The notes: a model not told the origin generated them from the letters alone. A stretch of 64,000 nucleotides of DNA from Octopus bimaculoides (GCF_001194135.2 NC_068991.1:42338950-42402949); one strand, 5' to 3'. Positions 15,736-23,559 are shown, counted from the first letter of the stretch. Made by a program: numbers and translations.

Positions 15736-16815
15736 TATTTATGTATATACATATGCATACATCCATAAATACACACACACACACACACACATATGTATTC
15801 AATTTAATAACATCACTTTACACCACACCACTGACGCATGTGCTCACTCATATACAAACACACACTCACATATATGCATTCAAAAATACATACACAAACA
15901 TACTGACTTCACCCCCCTACTCATGTTTCATCATCACCCATTTTGCTTACAATCACACATTCATGCACACATACACCCCTCAAACACACATGCCTATGCA
16001 CCTTTCCATGTGCCTTCTACATAGTGCTCACACACACACACACATACACACATACACACACATACACACACATGCATGCATGCATGCACACATGTACACA
16101 CTCACACTTATTGTGATGTAAGAGTTGTAAAGTATACTGGTTTCATATTTTGGCACAAAGCCAGCAAGTTCAAGGAAAGGGGTGAGTCAATTACATTGAT
16201 TCCCCGCCCCCGTACCCAACTGATACTTATTTTATCAACTCACAAAAGGATGAAAAGTGAAGTCAACCTCAGAAGCATAAGAATTGTAAAACATATTAAC
16301 ATGTATTTTAAATAGCCGGGGCTGAAAGTCAGAGCAGACAATTGACTTTCAATGTAAGCACTTACATACATGCATACACACTCATACACACATAGGTATA
16401 AGTATTTATCACCACCACCACCACCACCACCATCATCATCACAATTGTTTAATGTTCATTTTTATATGCTTGCATGCATCAAACACACTTTGTGGAGGTT
16501 ATATTTTTCTTAAGTCAGATGCCCTCCCTGTAATCAATTGTAACCTATTTCCAAGCAAATGATGATGATGATAAATATATATATATGTATGTGTGTGTGT
16601 GTGTGTGTAAATACATGTAAACCTTGGCATGCTTTAGTGGCGGATTGCAAAAAATGATACCATTTGTATGAAGAGTGACTTTTAATTACAATCATTCCAA
16701 GATAGGGAACACACACACACACACACACACCTGCGCATATATATACCTGCATACACACACACACTCACATTCACACATATATATGTACATGTGTAAAATA
16801 CACACGCACACATTC

Positions 16816-16860
<45 letters not shown>

Positions 16861-17024
16861 GAGTCAGCCACGCTCAAATGATTTGAACTTATGCACTGAA
16901 ATCTTTACTGAGGATTAAGTCTGTGGGGGTATAAGAGGAATCCATGTGAGCAGATATGGAGATAATGATACAAATAAACAAATAAACTGCTTGGGCTTGA
17001 TATATAAAATATACATACATATAT

Positions 17025-17285
17025 GCGCAGGAGTGGCTGTGTGGTAAGTAGTTTGCTTACCAACCACATGGATCCAGGTTCAGTCCCACTGCATGGCACA
17101 TTGAGCAACCAATTGCTTGACAACCGATGTTGGTGTGTTTATGTCTCCGTAACTTAGTAGTTCAGCAAAAGAGACTGATAGAATAAGTACTATGCTTACA
17201 AAGAATAAGTCCTGGGGTCAATTTGTTTGACTAAAGGCTGTGCTCCAGCATGGCCGCAGTCAAATGACTGAAACAAATAAAAGAA
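17025..17285 (+). mobile_element. tRNA-derived SINE family B
   Basis: gcgcaggagtggctgtgtggtaagtagtttgcttaccaaccacatgg..ggttcagtcccactgc head and ..gactgaaacaaataaaagaata tail. Other copies at about 5640-5805(-), 6380-6510(-), 27170-27585(+), 30150-30560(-), 40095-40420(+), 43640-44065(+), 54460-54840(+), 55130-55225(-), 62265-62420(+), 62630-62715(-). Confidence 0.8.
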
Positions 17286-18249
17286 TAATAGAATGTACAT
17301 GTAAATAGAGAGAAAACAGAGACTGAAAATATAAAGATGGTGAACATTCATGTATAAATATATAGATATTTATATATAGATGCCTATCTCTCCACCCTGA
17401 AGACAGAGACTGGATTTACTGAATGTTTATATGCTTCCACTACTGGTTCCATGTACTTTACTTTACTACGTCAGCCAATAGTATGAAGTAACTCCAAGTC
17501 CCCAGAAACAGCTACCAAGATCTGTAACACCATACCTTCTCCCATTAATTTTCTGTGCCTTTGTACTCTGTGTAAGTCTGGTCTGTTAATATATAAATAT
17601 CCATATATCTATGTATGAATGAATACTCACCATCTGAATATTTTCAGTCTTTGTTTTCTCTCTATTTACATGTGAATATATGTTTTTATATATATCACTT
17701 ATGTAGCTTGATTAGCTTTATGCTTTCAAGATGTGAATAAAACAAAGAAACCATCTCCCATGAACTTGTTCAATGACTTTCAAGTGTTTTAACACCCAGT
17801 GCAATGAGGGAGTCATCCCCAGAGTGAACTGCAGTGAACTGGCAAGCAAGCAAAACACATACATTGAGTAAATGCAGTCAATAATGTTTACAACATTAGC
17901 ACTGCTTTTAACTCGTAATTGAATTTAATCTTATGTATGCATTGTTGCAGCATACCAGCAGATGGTTCTTACATTATTTGTATAAAGCCATAAATTGGTG
18001 ATTCAGTTCATCTCCAGTTTGATTCAGGTATGTGATGTTGATAATCCACAAAAATGGCAAAATGTTGGTATCCATCACTCACTCCTGGATGGGATTGGAG
18101 GTGGATTGTCTTGCCTGTGTATGACTGTGCTATGAGGGAGTTGTGCCCAGAGCACTGTACTGCAGCAAACAGGTAAATGAGAGAAACACATATGTACATT
18201 GAGTATGTGTGACCGATAATGTTTACAACACTAGTGCTGCTTTTAATTC

Positions 18250-18287
<38 letters not shown>

Positions 18288-18309
18288 TAGATAGATAGAT
18301 AGATAGATA

Positions 18310-20591
18310 CAGTAGGCCCTGCTTTATAAATCCATCTTGGGACCACCTATTTGGGATTTATTAACAGAGGGAACAAAATTTGCCAATTGATTAAACATGT
18401 GTATTTATTAAAATACATATGTATGTGAATACACAAATAAAAACATTATAAACAATGTCATTGAATCAAAAATTTGTCAAGCATTGTTTGCTTTCCGGGA
18501 TGTATTGTTTGTAACTCTGCATTGATTTTTTTTCCTTAAGAGTTCTAAAAAGATTCATGTCACTGAAATCAAAACTTCCAAGTTTACTTTCAAGTTAGAT
18601 AGTGTTTCATTTCAGCTGGTGTTTGAGGCTCCAGAACTCTTTCATCAACATCAATGTTGGAATCGCCATCTTCATCTCCTTCAGTTTCCTTCTTAGATTG
18701 CTGAATGTCATGAATAATCTCTAGTTTTTCTTCTTCAGTGATGATCTCTGGAGCAACAACAGTCCCATCATCTACAGACAACCAATTTTTGAAATGCTTT
18801 TCGGTCAATCCAATAGGTGGTGAAGGCAGGATCAAATCTTTGTTAACATCTATGGCTTCATTTGATTCTTTGGGCGAAACAAAACCAGCTTTGATCCAGC
18901 TTTGATTGTCTAGCTAGAGACCTTCTTCCAAGCTACACTTAACATGTACATGGCATCCAAAATGGTGATCAGCTTTGCAACTTCTTGGGCAAAAATGTCA
19001 CATTCAGTGTCTTCTATAACATCTTTCACATTTCATGTTTGAAGTAGGCTTTCAAGGTCTTGATTATCCCCATGTCACAGGGCTGCAGCACTGACATTGT
19101 GTTGGGAGGAAGAAATTTTAAAGTGATATTCTTGAGATCATCGATGACTACACCAGAAAAGCAATTGTCAAGTAGGACCACCACTTGTCTTCCAGATTCC
19201 TGCAAACAACGATCCCAAGATCTGAGCCATCTTCCATAGATTTTTTCTGTCATCCAAGCATTGGTTGAAAAGTTGTATTGAATCGGAAACATTTTGACAT
19301 TTTTGAAGCATCTTGGTGAACCAGCCTTTCCGATTAAGAGCAAGTCTTCTTTGTCTCCACTCATGTTGCAGGCCACCATCAAGGTCACATGATCCTGTGC
19401 TGTCTTAAAGCCTCTCACAGTTTTCTTGCAACTCTTGTAGACATATGTATTTCCTGGTAATGCACGGAAGTAGATCGCAGTTTCATTAGCGTTGTAGATG
19501 TCCTGTGGCCTATACAATTTCAACAGAAGCTGCATGGTTGTCTCATGAAATTGATGGGCTCCATCAACGTGAACTTCAGCTGCATCACCTGCTAAGAATG
19601 ATATGTTTAGTTTGTGTTCTCTAAAGAGAAAAATGTGAACTAGTGAATTACATCACTTACCTTTTAGAACCGTAAAAAAAATTCCATGTCTTTTTTGCCA
19701 ATGGTAAAACCAACCTTTGAATGCCTTAAAATCGTGTCCAGCAGCTTGAGCAATGCTGTTGGTTTTGTGCATTAGGATCGGGCCATTGACAGGGACATTT
19801 CTCAAGCAAATAAATTGAAACCAATTGTAGAGAGCACAGTCTGTCTGTTGGTCTTTTCCCTCTCGCTGGCATTTTCTCTTTGATGAACAGCCATCATGTT
19901 CTTTGGCACAATAGGTCATCCTCATTCTTTAGCAAATTCTGGAGCAGACCTCTTGAAATTCCTAAACTCTGTGCTGCTTCCCACTGAGTTGTTTTCCCAA
20001 GAGCTTTGTAACATTCTAACAATTGAATCTTTTCTGCCACAGATTTGTCCTGCCTTTCTCTTTTCATTCTGAACATTTTGAACAACTTGTGTGTATGTCT
20101 GCCTCTCTATGTGAATGACAAATGATGCGTTTCTTTTGCTTTTAAATACTGACAGGTAGGCTCCAGCAGCTGCAACCAACCAGCTGTCACATGGTACACA
20201 CCATCATTCAATGAATAAGAAGGGCGCGTAATTTTGACAAGGGGTGTCTTGGAGCTTACTTTTCCACTTGAATGACAGGGTTGTGAGGTAGACTCCAGCA
20301 GCCACCACCAGCTACTACATATTTATCGATCTATTTTTGGATGATAGAGTGTACCACATGACAGCTGGCTGGCTGTGGCTGCTGGAGTCTACCTGTCAGT
20401 ATTTAAGAGTGAAAAAATAAGCACTTCATTCATTCACTGCCACTTGTTGAATCTTTAGGAAGGAGCAGTGGCAACTGGATTTATTAAGCGATGGTTTGGA
20501 TTTATTAAATGAGAGATTTTATGTGTAAAAATTCCATCCCAACCCATTTTGGATACATTAAATGGATGGATTTATAAAGTGGGATCTACTG
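18310..20591 (-). mobile_element. Full-length pogo/Tigger DNA transposon (2282 bp), inactivated
   Basis: 27-bp TIRs cagtaggccctgctttataaatccatc / cagtagatcccactttataaatccatc (23/27 identical), TA target-site duplication at 18308-18309 and 20592-20593, internal transposase remnant. Confidence 0.95.
18470..20085 (-). pseudogene. Tigger-type transposase pseudogene (psq-like HTH, CENP-B HTH, DDE_1), two exons
   Basis: SVAEKIQLLE..EAAQSLGISRGLLQNLLKN (HTH), ..GPILMHK..FKAFKGWFYHWQKRHGI (CENP-B HTH), IYNANET (first catalytic D changed to N), LLDNC, FLPPNTMSVLQPCDMGII, ITILDAMYMLSVAWKKVS. Frameshifts near 19920, 19025 and 18900 plus in-frame stops. AATAAA on the minus strand at 18404-18409. Confidence 0.9.
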
Positions 20592-20609
20592 TATATATAT
20601 ATATATATC

Positions 20610-21190
20610 ATCATCATCATCATCATCGTTTAACGTCTGCTTTCCATACTAGTATGGGTTGGACGATTTGACTGAGGACTGGCGAACCAGATGGCTGCAC
20701 CAGGCTCCAATCTGATCTGGCAGAGTTTCTACAGCTGGATGCCCTTCCAAACGCCAATCACTCCAAGAGTGTAGTGCGTGCTTTTACGTACCACCGGCAT
20801 GAGTGCCAGTCTGGTGGTACTGGCAATGGCTATGCTCAAATGATGTTTTTTACGTGCCACCTGCACAGGAGTCAGTCCAGCAGCACTGGCAATGACCTCA
20901 CTTGAATGTTTTGTTCATGTGTCACCAGCACAAGTGCTAGTAAGGCGACGCTGGTAACGATCACACTCAAATGGTGCTTTTTATGTGCCACCAGCACAGA
21001 AGCCAGACAGCTGCTCTGGCATTGATCCTGCTCAGATAGAGCTGTTGGTGCTCCACTGGCATGGGTGCCAGTCATCGAATTTGGTTCAATTTCGATTTCA
21101 CTTGCCCCAACAGGTCTCCGCAAGCAGAGTTTATTGTCCAATGAAGGAAGGTTGGCATGGGTGCCAGTCGTCGAATTTGGTTCGATTTTG
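20610..21190 (-). mobile_element. Long family C copy with internal subrepeats
   Basis: (CAT)n then gtttaacgtctgctttccatactag..ggatgcccttcc, repeated tacgtgccacc..tggcaa units, and a direct repeat tggcatgggtgccagtc.tcgaatttggttc near 21057 and 21155. Confidence 0.75.
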
Positions 21191-21251
<61 letters not shown>

Positions 21252-21343
21252 CACATGAGTCATCTAAGAGACCATAAGTCAGGGAAGAGATGCACTTGTA
21301 TATCTGTTAGAGTGGGTATATTATCCAAAAAGTATACTAGTGA

Positions 21344-21510
21344 ATATCCAACATGGTTGGTCTTACCAATCGGTTTCATGTAAAGAATACAATGGAGTGT
21401 TAGGTAACACACTGATTATATAACTTTATGCTCATCAGAGTTGGCCAATATGGAAAGGAATACGGTGACTGCTCTCTATTATTCAGAAGCAGATTAACTC
21501 AACCAGTCAG
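21344..21510 (-). ncRNA. Hammerhead-like motif, left arm of inverted pair (decayed)
   Basis: Minus strand: CTGATGA GCATAAAG..CTTTACAT GAAA CCGATTGG TA AGA. Stem II is damaged by CpG-type transitions. Confidence 0.45.
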
Positions 21511-21652
21511 TAGTTGCTGTGAAGTTCATATACAATCACACGTTCATGCATACATACACTCCTCAAATACATATGCTTATGCACCTTTCCATATGCCTTC
21601 TACATAGTGCTCACACACACGCATGCACACATGTACACACATACACACACCG

Positions 21653-21817
21653 CTGACTGGTTGTGCTAATCCACCTCTGACAATAGAGAGCAGTTGCCAT
21701 ATTCCCTACCATATCGGCTATCTCTGATGAGCGTAAAGTTATATCATCGGTTCGTTACCTAACACTTCATTGTATTCTTTATGTGAAACTAATTGGTAAG
21801 ACCAGCCATGGTGGATA
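21653..21817 (+). ncRNA. Candidate type I hammerhead ribozyme, right arm of inverted pair
   Basis: GGCTATCT CTGATGA(21724-21730) GCGTAAAG..38 nt..CTTTATGT GAAA(21785-21788) CTAATTGG TA AGACCAGCC. Stem II is 8 bp including G-U pairs, loop III is near-palindromic, and the cleavage triplet is GUA. Confidence 0.55.
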
Positions 21818-21906
21818 TTTAATACTATAATTTTCATATAATAAATATATATATATATATATATATATATTTTCAGATAATATATATATATATATACTTT
21901 TCAGAT

Positions 21907-21946
<40 letters not shown>

Positions 21947-22044
21947 TTCTTACACACACACACACTCATGGACATATATGTATACATGTATTTATGTATA
22001 CATTGTATACATAATAGACTAAATAGAATGCTCTCAAAAAAGGA

Positions 22045-22777
22045 GTAGAATGGTACTTTAGAAGGATTAGATACCATCTAAAATTGTATCAATTACACGG
22101 ATGCTTTAACCATAGGATTACCTAACTCACAGATAGTTGCAAAAACATCAAAACACCACAGATGTCAAGGGTCACGCTTAGTTTGATCTTCACCCAGAAC
22201 CTCAACTTGGAAAAGTAACCCAATACAGAAGGGTGTGCCTCACATAAGTTGATATCTGTTCATTTTTCCCACCTTTTGTCCACAAATCTTTAAGGGCACT
22301 TTAACTTCATATGTATTAGCAACCATTGTATTCTCTATTTTAGGAACTGAGAGCTAACAGAATTGAACTGCATGTCTCTAATTAAATATTGTGGCATGTA
22401 ACATGAATCTTGTTATCATTTGAATGTGCTATGAGGTTCCTCATGCTTCTGTGTTCTTTTAGTATAGGTGGTCTGTTTTTCTCTTGATTGCTGTTATGTC
22501 AAAAGGGATAATGCAGCATATGAAACTAAAAAGCTGGAATCAAATCTTTATTTTTTCCTCACAAAACTGTATTTGCTTCAGCTATCCCTTGAAGCAGAAT
22601 GTAAAGGCATGGAGGGGAAATCTAAGAAGTCATGTCATTAAGTAAACATTATGAGCAATAGGTTTCACATGGATGACTGAGTCAATTGTCTTGTTTTGGA
22701 GATGATGTTAAAGGAGGGAGAAGGTTTATGTCCATATAATGATGGAGTTATCTGATCCTTCTAAAGTTGGGTTCCAC
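22045..22777. mobile_element. Old TIR-bounded element, unclassified
   Basis: actttagaaggattagata (from 22055) versus the reverse complement of tatctgatccttctaaagt (22749-22767) match 18/19, with weaker similarity on both sides. No clear ORF. Confidence 0.4.
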
Positions 22778-22843
22778 ACTTTTTTTTAGGGTATCCTGTT
22801 CATGAATATGCCCATGAATGTATAAATACATATGAATATATGA

Positions 22844-22892
<49 letters not shown>

Positions 22893-23559
22893 TACATCCA
22901 GTCACACACACATACACATAGACACAAGTGAGTGTCTTCATATACTTACATGTATGTATGTTTGTATATACAAATAAATACATATCTGGCACACCCTATT
23001 TTAACCTTCTTTATTTCTATTGTATAACTGTTTTCACAAATAAGCACAAGGCCTTGGATTTGTAGGAGAGGTGAAATAGAATGCTTTGTGATGAATATGA
23101 ATTTCCTAACGACGTCAGCTGTAATGATTACAATAATGATTTCTTTATTTTGCCACAAGGATAACATAAGTATAACAATACGATGCAAATAATATGAGTT
23201 TCTAAATACAATGTAGAAATATATTTAAAATAGACAAATATACAAAACATACCATCACAATAATAATAATAAGAAGAATAAGAATCATAATATAAATAAT
23301 AATAACAACTGAGAAGGGACAGTCAATGAGAGGTTCGAGGCACCCTAAAACCTTGACCACCTTCCCATTCTCTCTTCCAACTTCAATCCTCAGACGAAAC
23401 TGAAGAGGTAGTCCTTTCACCAACACCAAATTCACCCCTTCTCACCCACCTTTTCTAAAATTTAGGAAAGAGTATTATCTCTCTCAACAAAGACATACAT
23501 TAAAAAAAATGTATTAGAATTATAAAAATGTCCATTAAACATGACGAGTAATAGTACAT

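Follow-up and report, generated by a model that had tools for sequence, protein, structure and literature searches.

A probable conserved phase-1 intron in the transposase gene of pogo-superfamily transposons represented in Octopus bimaculoides

The stretch of DNA analysed here, 64,000 nucleotides (nt) long and referred to below as the window, belongs to the Octopus bimaculoides chromosome CM046611.1 (GCA_001194135.2) and holds, on its minus strand at 18310..20591, a decayed 2282-bp copy of a pogo/Tigger-like DNA transposon. The transposase gene of this copy is interrupted at 19589..19660 by a 72-nt segment, which we regard, with a probability of about 0.88, as a true U2-type GT-AG intron, inherited in the transposase gene of a pogo-superfamily lineage (Tigger/pogoR-type, DD30D). 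In the arrangement we propose, exon 1 would code for a bipartite helix-turn-helix (HTH) DNA-binding region and exon 2 for a linker, the DDD catalytic domain and a C-terminal tail, and the full-length transposase would be obtainable from spliced mRNA alone. The intron would most likely have been gained once, at an AAG/G proto-splice site (here and below, a slash marks the splice boundary), in the ancestor of a clade now present in Octopus and in eukaryotes sampled by several metagenome assemblies. It would then have been held at the same nucleotide while its length (64-107 nt) and sequence drifted, and would probably have been lost precisely in at least one lineage.

A 72-nt segment interrupting the transposase reading frame

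The minus strand of the window reads ...acg gtt cta aaa g/GTAAGTGATG...CATTCTTAGCAG/gt gat gca gct gaa across this region. The final base of exon 1 is 19661. The donor GT (19660-19659) and the acceptor AG (19590-19589) delimit a segment of exactly 72 nt with an A+T content of 69%, versus 58-59% in the adjoining coding sequence. The segment and its borders have the form AAG/GTAAGT ... CTAAAC ... TTCTTAGCAG/G, in which the donor context AAG/GTAAGT equals the full consensus and the acceptor context is CAG/G. Inspection by eye, with no scoring model, placed a likely branch A within CTAAAC, ~18 nt upstream of the AG; by the same inspection, CTAAC occurs in two of the related loci described below (L007 and L003) and the 3′ ends are pyrimidine-rich. 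Without splicing, the frame runs ..FFTVLKGK and terminates at a TGA stop codon. Removal of the 72 nt yields the reading RHGIFFTVLKGDAAEVHVDGAHQFHETTMQLLLKLYRPQDIYNANET (..RHGIFFTVLKGDAAEVHVDGAHQF..), with the junction in phase 1 (G/GT) and the spliced junction sequence ..TTCTAAAAG/GTGATGCAGC..; it fuses ..RHGIFFTVLKG to DAAEVHV.. and makes the protein colinear again with homologous transposases. We infer that the segment is removed by the spliceosome in vivo.

Comparison with homologs located the segment within the protein. Relatives are gapless at the junction (..VLKGEAAEAD.. or ..LKGEAAE..), and the closest full-length ones are continuous through it, namely P0003 (..FTVLKGEAAEADV..), P0004 from Pycnogonum (..FTILKDEAADTDV..) and P0005 (..KLYGEASEAN..); another annotated relative, P0010, is from Nucella. 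Since these relatives are continuous and hold no counterpart of the 72 nt, the 24 codons represent an insert relative to the homologs. In the spliced translation of a related element, L002, the HTH_Tnp_Tc5 match extends to residue 130 and the DDE_1 match begins at residue 198; between them lie the junction glycine at residue 135 and the first catalytic D at residue 169. The junction is thus found 5 residues past the end of HTH_Tnp_Tc5 and 34 residues ahead of the first catalytic D, which puts the intron between the DNA-binding and the catalytic parts of the protein.

An earlier sequence-only reading of the window had described an AT-rich GT..AG segment with an in-frame stop at 19660-19589 and had interpreted it as a phase-1 intron of a transposase gene, lying between the DNA-binding and catalytic domains. 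Its coordinates, ends and early stop (GK followed by the stop codon) proved exact, removal of the segment restores both frame and homology, and the residue numbers in spliced L002 bear out the location. The TAGCAG (NAGNAG) acceptor it had noticed is present in the window copy, and is absent from L002, L003, L006, L007, L009 and L010; being private to the window copy among the seven loci compared, it was ruled out as a family feature.

The same position in related elements

A second, more decayed copy of the octopus family, L007, was found in a Logan contig (SRR11869391). Its identity with the window copy is 78% over 1515 nt, and the two closely resemble each other in the 5′ terminal inverted repeat (TIR). 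Its homologous segment measures 64 nt owing to an 8-nt deletion, and keeps the acceptor AG while the donor is mutated to TT, a change of the kind expected of neutral decay. Because L007 holds the homologous segment, the segment must have been present in the common ancestor of both copies.

Beyond the octopus family, GT..AG inserts 69-107 nt long occupy the same codon, in the same phase, at five related loci drawn from four other ENA assemblies. These are L002 (91 nt, GTAAGC..CAG) and L003 (107 nt, GTAAGA..CAG) in ERZ23499590, L006 (75 nt, GTTAGT..TAG) in ERZ22157276, L009 (69 nt, GTTAGT..TAG) in ERZ27241786, and L010 (72 nt, GTCAGT..CAG) in the Tara sample ERZ28655371. Metagenome gene calls include proteins that begin or end precisely at the junction, such as P0009, which starts MLLTWSSSVFFSSSAG/EAAEAD. 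In all five, the boundary AAAG/GT...AG/G falls at the identical nucleotide, and the inserts have an A+T content of 62-76%, versus 50-59% in their flanks. Taken over seven loci, the inserts are 64-107 nt long, in phase 1 and 11-17 percentage points richer in A+T than the flanks. The insert sequences are alignable in one pair alone, the close relatives L006 and L009, and over the adjoining 143 residues identity with the octopus sequence is 63-66%. The sequence-only reading had named conservation of the GT/AG ends and of the position as its check: the position is conserved in seven of seven loci and GT..AG in six of seven, the donor of the decayed L007 being the exception.

Two of these elements appear to be complete. 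L002 and L006 have both TIRs, TA flanks, two open exons and an intact DDD triad, and their spliced translations, of 516 and 510 amino acids respectively, contain HTH_Tnp_Tc5 and DDE_1. They are apparently autonomous elements in which splicing would be required for a full-length transposase. The inserts of L002 (91 nt) and L003 (107 nt) need splicing in any case, since their lengths are not multiples of 3. Furthermore, three more copies of the L009 family, in the Joint Genome Institute (JGI) metagenome Ga0210059, bear the intron, and GT and YAG are kept in 4/4 copies of this family (two datasets). As all four carry the intron, it was present in the form that was amplified. A separate observation concerns L010:99-773, where the database protein P0154 owes its passage through the retained intron solely to a gene call that took TGA as Trp; under the standard code the reading stops after GQ.

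These copies and loci bear directly on whether the 72 nt could be a private insertion, or a degenerate coding stretch of a single decayed copy, with GT and AG at its ends by chance. The heavy decay of the window copy and a segment length that is a multiple of 3 would fit this explanation. It is nevertheless scarcely credible, given the homologous segment in L007, the GT..AG inserts at the same nucleotide in five other loci, intact elements among them, and the gapless homologs. The proposal that the parental family carries the intron is accordingly supported, as far as DNA can show, by the homologous segment in L007 and by inserts at the same codon in L002, L003, L006, L009 and L010.

To place the intron-bearing elements among their relatives, simple neighbour-joining (NJ) distance trees were built with 200 bootstraps and about 290-500 columns. 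The intron-bearing elements formed one clade, with 90% NJ bootstrap support, or 83% when L008 and P0130 were added. The members of its sister clade (P0003/L004, P0013, P0004, P0008, P0121, P0123 and P0126) are single open reading frames (ORFs) over the junction, as are distant relatives. L004, an intronless element, is complete in genomic DNA, with a TIR at either end and flanking sequence; its site reads TTG AAG GGA GAA, which contains an AAG/G proto-splice site. L005 is likewise uninterrupted at the junction. One locus, L008:2208-3896 (ENA ERZ22157276 ctg12594l, the same assembly as L006), falls inside the intron clade yet lacks the intron, reading TTA AAA TGT GAA. It is decayed and 5′-truncated, and retains a 3′ TIR almost identical to that of L002. 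L008 probably represents a precise intron loss in a DNA transposon lineage, as its place in the tree would indicate, although with weak internal resolution it may instead be basal in the clade. A processed retrocopy of a spliced mRNA, which would have been proof of splicing, was rejected for L008, as this locus keeps its 3′ TIR and has no poly(A). Read from these sequences, the history would most simply comprise one gain, long retention and occasional loss.

A deeper origin was considered as well, in which the intron would already have been present in the ancestor of a far larger portion of the pogo superfamily (and be homologous, for instance, to that of Drosophila pogo), and would have been lost repeatedly. 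Drosophila pogo likewise has a short intron between two ORFs, L008 shows that precise loss is possible, and the TIGD4/6-like names together with the DD30D spacing would fit pogoR, pogo's own family (PMC7386202). Against this stands the finding that every sampled junction-spanning relative outside the clade is a single ORF in genomic contigs, some of Mb size; these intronless outsiders include L004, L005, P0011, P0013, P0022, P0025 and others. We consider such an ancient origin improbable, and favour a single gain in the ancestor of the clade.

Several points weigh against interpreting the segment as an inherited, spliced intron with this history. The octopus family is represented by two copies only (the window copy and L007, the two examined), and the elements outside Octopus come from metagenomes. 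In three families the insert length is a multiple of 3, and there only the in-frame stop demands splicing. Resolution within the clade is weak (22-74%), and gain followed by loss is not firmly separable from other orders of events. Finally, a junction-spanning profile search and a metagenome scan, which covered proteins and metagenome contigs, yielded nothing but unspliced genomic copies of intron-clade elements and relatives that have no intron. Neither the protein collection nor the scanned metagenomes contained a spliced transcript or a spliced protein from any intron-bearing member; the sole junction-spanning protein of this clade in the collections was L008/P0139, the intronless genomic copy.

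The window copy, its annotation and its surroundings

The element in the window was delimited by its TIRs and identified by Pfam and CENP-B domain matches. Each TIR is 27 nt long (CAGTAG...TTTATAAATCCATC). The 5′ TIR, CAGTAGATCCCACTTTATAAATCCATC, was found by repeat search at 20565..20591 on the minus strand, where it adjoins a (TA)n run, and similar TIRs occur in L004, L007 and L002; the 3′ TIR at 18310..18336 (plus strand, CAGTAGGCCCTGCTTTATAAATCCATC) is matched nowhere else in the window, the number of chance matches expected being 0. The equivalent of exon 1 (19661..20076, minus strand), recovered as tblastn pieces at 20076-19897 and from 19907 onwards, covers the two-HTH DNA-binding region and ends in ..RHGIFFTVLK plus the G of the split codon. 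The equivalent of exon 2 (18593..19588, minus strand) covers the linker, the DDE_1 catalytic domain and an acidic C-terminal region, as assigned by translation and Pfam. The window translation matched HTH_Tnp_Tc5 (residues 84-139) at 6e-10 and DDE_1 at 5e-36, and its residues 10-135 matched the CENP-B DNA-binding domain 1hlv at 1e-6. The catalytic residues are N177/D283/D314 with DD30D spacing, and the distance of 30 between the last two is the same in the window copy, L002, L006 and P0005. The element thus combines short TIRs, HTH plus HTH_Tnp_Tc5, DDE_1 and a DDD-type spacing within 29-36, as pogo-superfamily elements do; Gao et al. (2020; PMC7386202) report 29-36 residues between the last two D in Tigger and pogoR. 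The Tigger label is used loosely here, for Tigger or pogoR in the sense of those authors. The named matches were TIGD4-like and TIGD6-like, which are pogoR-derived according to PMC7386202, and jerky-like, which is Tigger-derived according to the same paper.

The window copy carries a frameshift in exon 1 near 19897-19925, and a stop with a frameshift at ~19026 and a further stop near 18910 in exon 2; in addition, its first catalytic D is replaced by N (NANET). On account of these frameshifts, stops and the substituted residue, the copy is judged to be a dead pseudogene or relic, catalytically dead, whose predicted splice signals happen to be intact despite the decay. No further copies of the element were found in the 64,000-nt window by TIR pattern, blastn or tblastn. 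TA stands on both sides of the element, but inside (TA)n runs: of the flanks at 18252-18309 and 20592-20640, one consists of (TA)n/(GATA)n and the other of (TA)n plus (GAT)n. Because these flanks are TA-rich repeats, a TA target-site duplication is inseparable from the microsatellites here; the TA flanks are clear in L002, L004 and L006.

The locus has also been annotated as a gene. The NCBI model P0001, 'tigger transposable element-derived protein 4-like' (window 19026-19925), led to the genomic locus L001, which equals window 16026-22925 on the reverse strand with identical sequence, and what it models is the decayed transposon copy itself. P0001 joins 19715 to 19618 across an alternative 96-nt GT..AG intron (19619..19714, minus strand) and reads ..AFK/EHKLNISFLAGDAAEV; it thereby drops the conserved GWFYHWQKRHGIFFTVLKG and renders part of the 72-nt intron as EHKLNISFLAG. 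If the model were correct, the locus would be a host gene with a true intron at 19714..19619, and annotation as a protein and canonical GT..AG ends would speak for it. We find this very unlikely. The model removes 19 conserved HTH_Tnp_Tc5 residues (GWFxRWxKR..) and translates non-homologous intron sequence instead, covers only 57% of the transposase and ends at a frameshift, and its splice is common to no relative. The locus, moreover, bears TIRs, stops and a mutated catalytic residue. The 96-nt intron was rejected on homology, as no relative supports such a splice, and is regarded as an artefact that would arise from modelling a pseudogene. A domesticated TIGD-like host gene is likewise contradicted by a reading frame that is shifted near 19900 and near 19026 and stopped near 18910, and by the preservation of both TIRs.

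Two further features were observed in and beside the element. Its 5′ untranslated part contains ~275 bp of extra sequence (20119-20393, minus strand) not present in the sister copy L007, with 81-nt inverted arms (20131-20211 and 20337-20417) that are 83% complementary. At their outer ends the arms repeat TTAAATACTGACAG of the element itself; the extra sequence may have arisen as a foldback duplication, or be a small element nested in this one. A repeat resembling a short interspersed element (SINE) adjoins the transposon at window ~20640-21200 and terminates in (GAT)n. It has a doubled unit, AAATCGAACCAAATTCGA(C/T)GACTGGCACCCATGCC, at about 21190-21150 and 21095-21055, and recurring GGCAC..AAAAGCAC blocks.

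Intron retention, known systems and significance

As a mechanical consequence of the intron position, retention would leave a truncated product with the HTH region only, and the predicted product holds this whole region in all families. An unspliced mRNA is expected to give only a DNA-binding fragment of ~140-200 residues. Translation agreed with the earlier proposal that the retained reading of the window copy ends in ..VLKGK, as a predicted product: the stop follows GK in the window copy, G in L006 and L009, and GQ in L010, whereas L003 would gain 18 extra residues and L002 a frameshifted tail of 64 residues. In the P element, retention of intron 3 (IVS3) gives rise to a 66-kDa repressor, a truncated DNA-binding protein with a THAP DNA-binding domain, and both the tissue-specific retention and the repressor activity were demonstrated experimentally (reviewed in PMC5443660). 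The elements described here are alike in that intron retention is predicted to yield a truncated DNA-binding protein; they belong to an unrelated superfamily, and the retained product is a predicted one.

By analogy with IVS3, retention might be regulated, for example between germline and soma, with the unspliced product acting as a DNA-binding-only repressor that would occupy the TIRs and subterminal repeats and repress transposition. Stops within 1-2 codons of the junction glycine in four loci of three independent lineages (GK, G, G and GQ, each followed by the stop) would suit such a switch. A downstream exon junction marks a transcript for nonsense-mediated decay (NMD) dependent on the exon junction complex (EJC), and with a single intron per element a retained transcript should have no such junction. 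Repeated AATAAATCC motifs near both ends would offer candidate binding sites. Several copies of the motif (T)TAATAAATCCA were observed just inside the ends (L002:100-230 and 2380-2440; L004:15-135 and 2005-2065; window ~20480-20560), and these are candidate subterminal transposase-binding repeats by comparison with pogo and Lemi1. On the other hand, early stops are expected in AT-rich introns and arise partly from the donor consensus itself (GGT TAG, GGT AAG TGA), no early stop occurs in L002 or L003, which would run on for 64 and 18 further residues, and any intron after a DNA-binding domain would make the same prediction. We know of no report of such regulation in Drosophila pogo. A regulated switch seems doubtful to us, and slightly more doubtful still is its clade-wide extension, in which horizontally spreading transposons would use the intron for dosage or tissue control, with a stop selected just after the donor and the exon-1 protein competing with the transposase at the TIRs and the AATAAATCC subterminal repeats. 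If true, a P-element-like repressor system of independent origin would exist in the Tc1/mariner-pogo group, and a regulatory role would be of greater consequence than the points on annotation and evolution made below.

Introns in transposase genes of the pogo superfamily are already known from pogo and have been proposed for Lemi1. An intron in Drosophila pogo had also been mentioned in the sequence-only reading; it is 55 nt long and lies between two ORFs (Tudor 1992, via bioRxiv 10.1101/2023.05.27.542554), and both cDNA and long reads have shown it to be spliced. The Drosophila melanogaster element (~2.1 kb, TA target) resembles the elements described here in being a pogo-superfamily TIR transposon with two ORFs and one short intron. 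The lineage is different, however, and the introns reported here are 64-107 nt long, occur in a clade spanning several hosts and are known from DNA alone; the likeness to the pogo intron is one of presence. In Arabidopsis, the pogo-like element Lemi1 has a putative intron near residue 385 that makes its transposase ORF continuous (PMC1636448; Feschotte & Mouches 2000), and its ORF1 alone is a DNA-binding protein for TIRs and subterminal repeats (Loot et al. 2006, PMC1636448). The continuity gained through an intron is shared with the elements reported here, whereas Lemi1 is a single-copy plant element whose intron lies inside or after the catalytic region and not after the DNA-binding domain.

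With the Tigger/pogoR transposons and TIGD/JRK/CENP-B genes surveyed so far (PMC7386202, PMC9219625), the elements have in common the order of N-terminal HTH, HTH_Tnp_Tc5 and DDE_1, the DDD triad with its 29-36 spacing, TA duplication and short TIRs. Single-ORF elements are what the Tigger survey of 2022 (PMC9219625) describes, and introns are unmentioned both there and in Gao et al. (2020; PMC7386202). Unlike the Tigger/pogoR elements so surveyed, the octopus-containing clade has a conserved intron, and a conserved intron in an animal clade of Tigger/pogoR type appears to be undescribed in the pogo/Tigger surveys consulted for comparison.

Surveys that score intactness by one long ORF (PMC7386202, PMC9219625) would count this clade as broken, and candidate active elements such as L002 and L006 would therefore be missed under that criterion. 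Genome annotation also mis-models such copies, as in the octopus, where the NCBI model invents another intron. A short intron at a fixed position across hosts, together with one probable precise loss, would provide a clean case of intron gain and loss, and the case also bears on the demands that splicing may place on host-to-host transfer.

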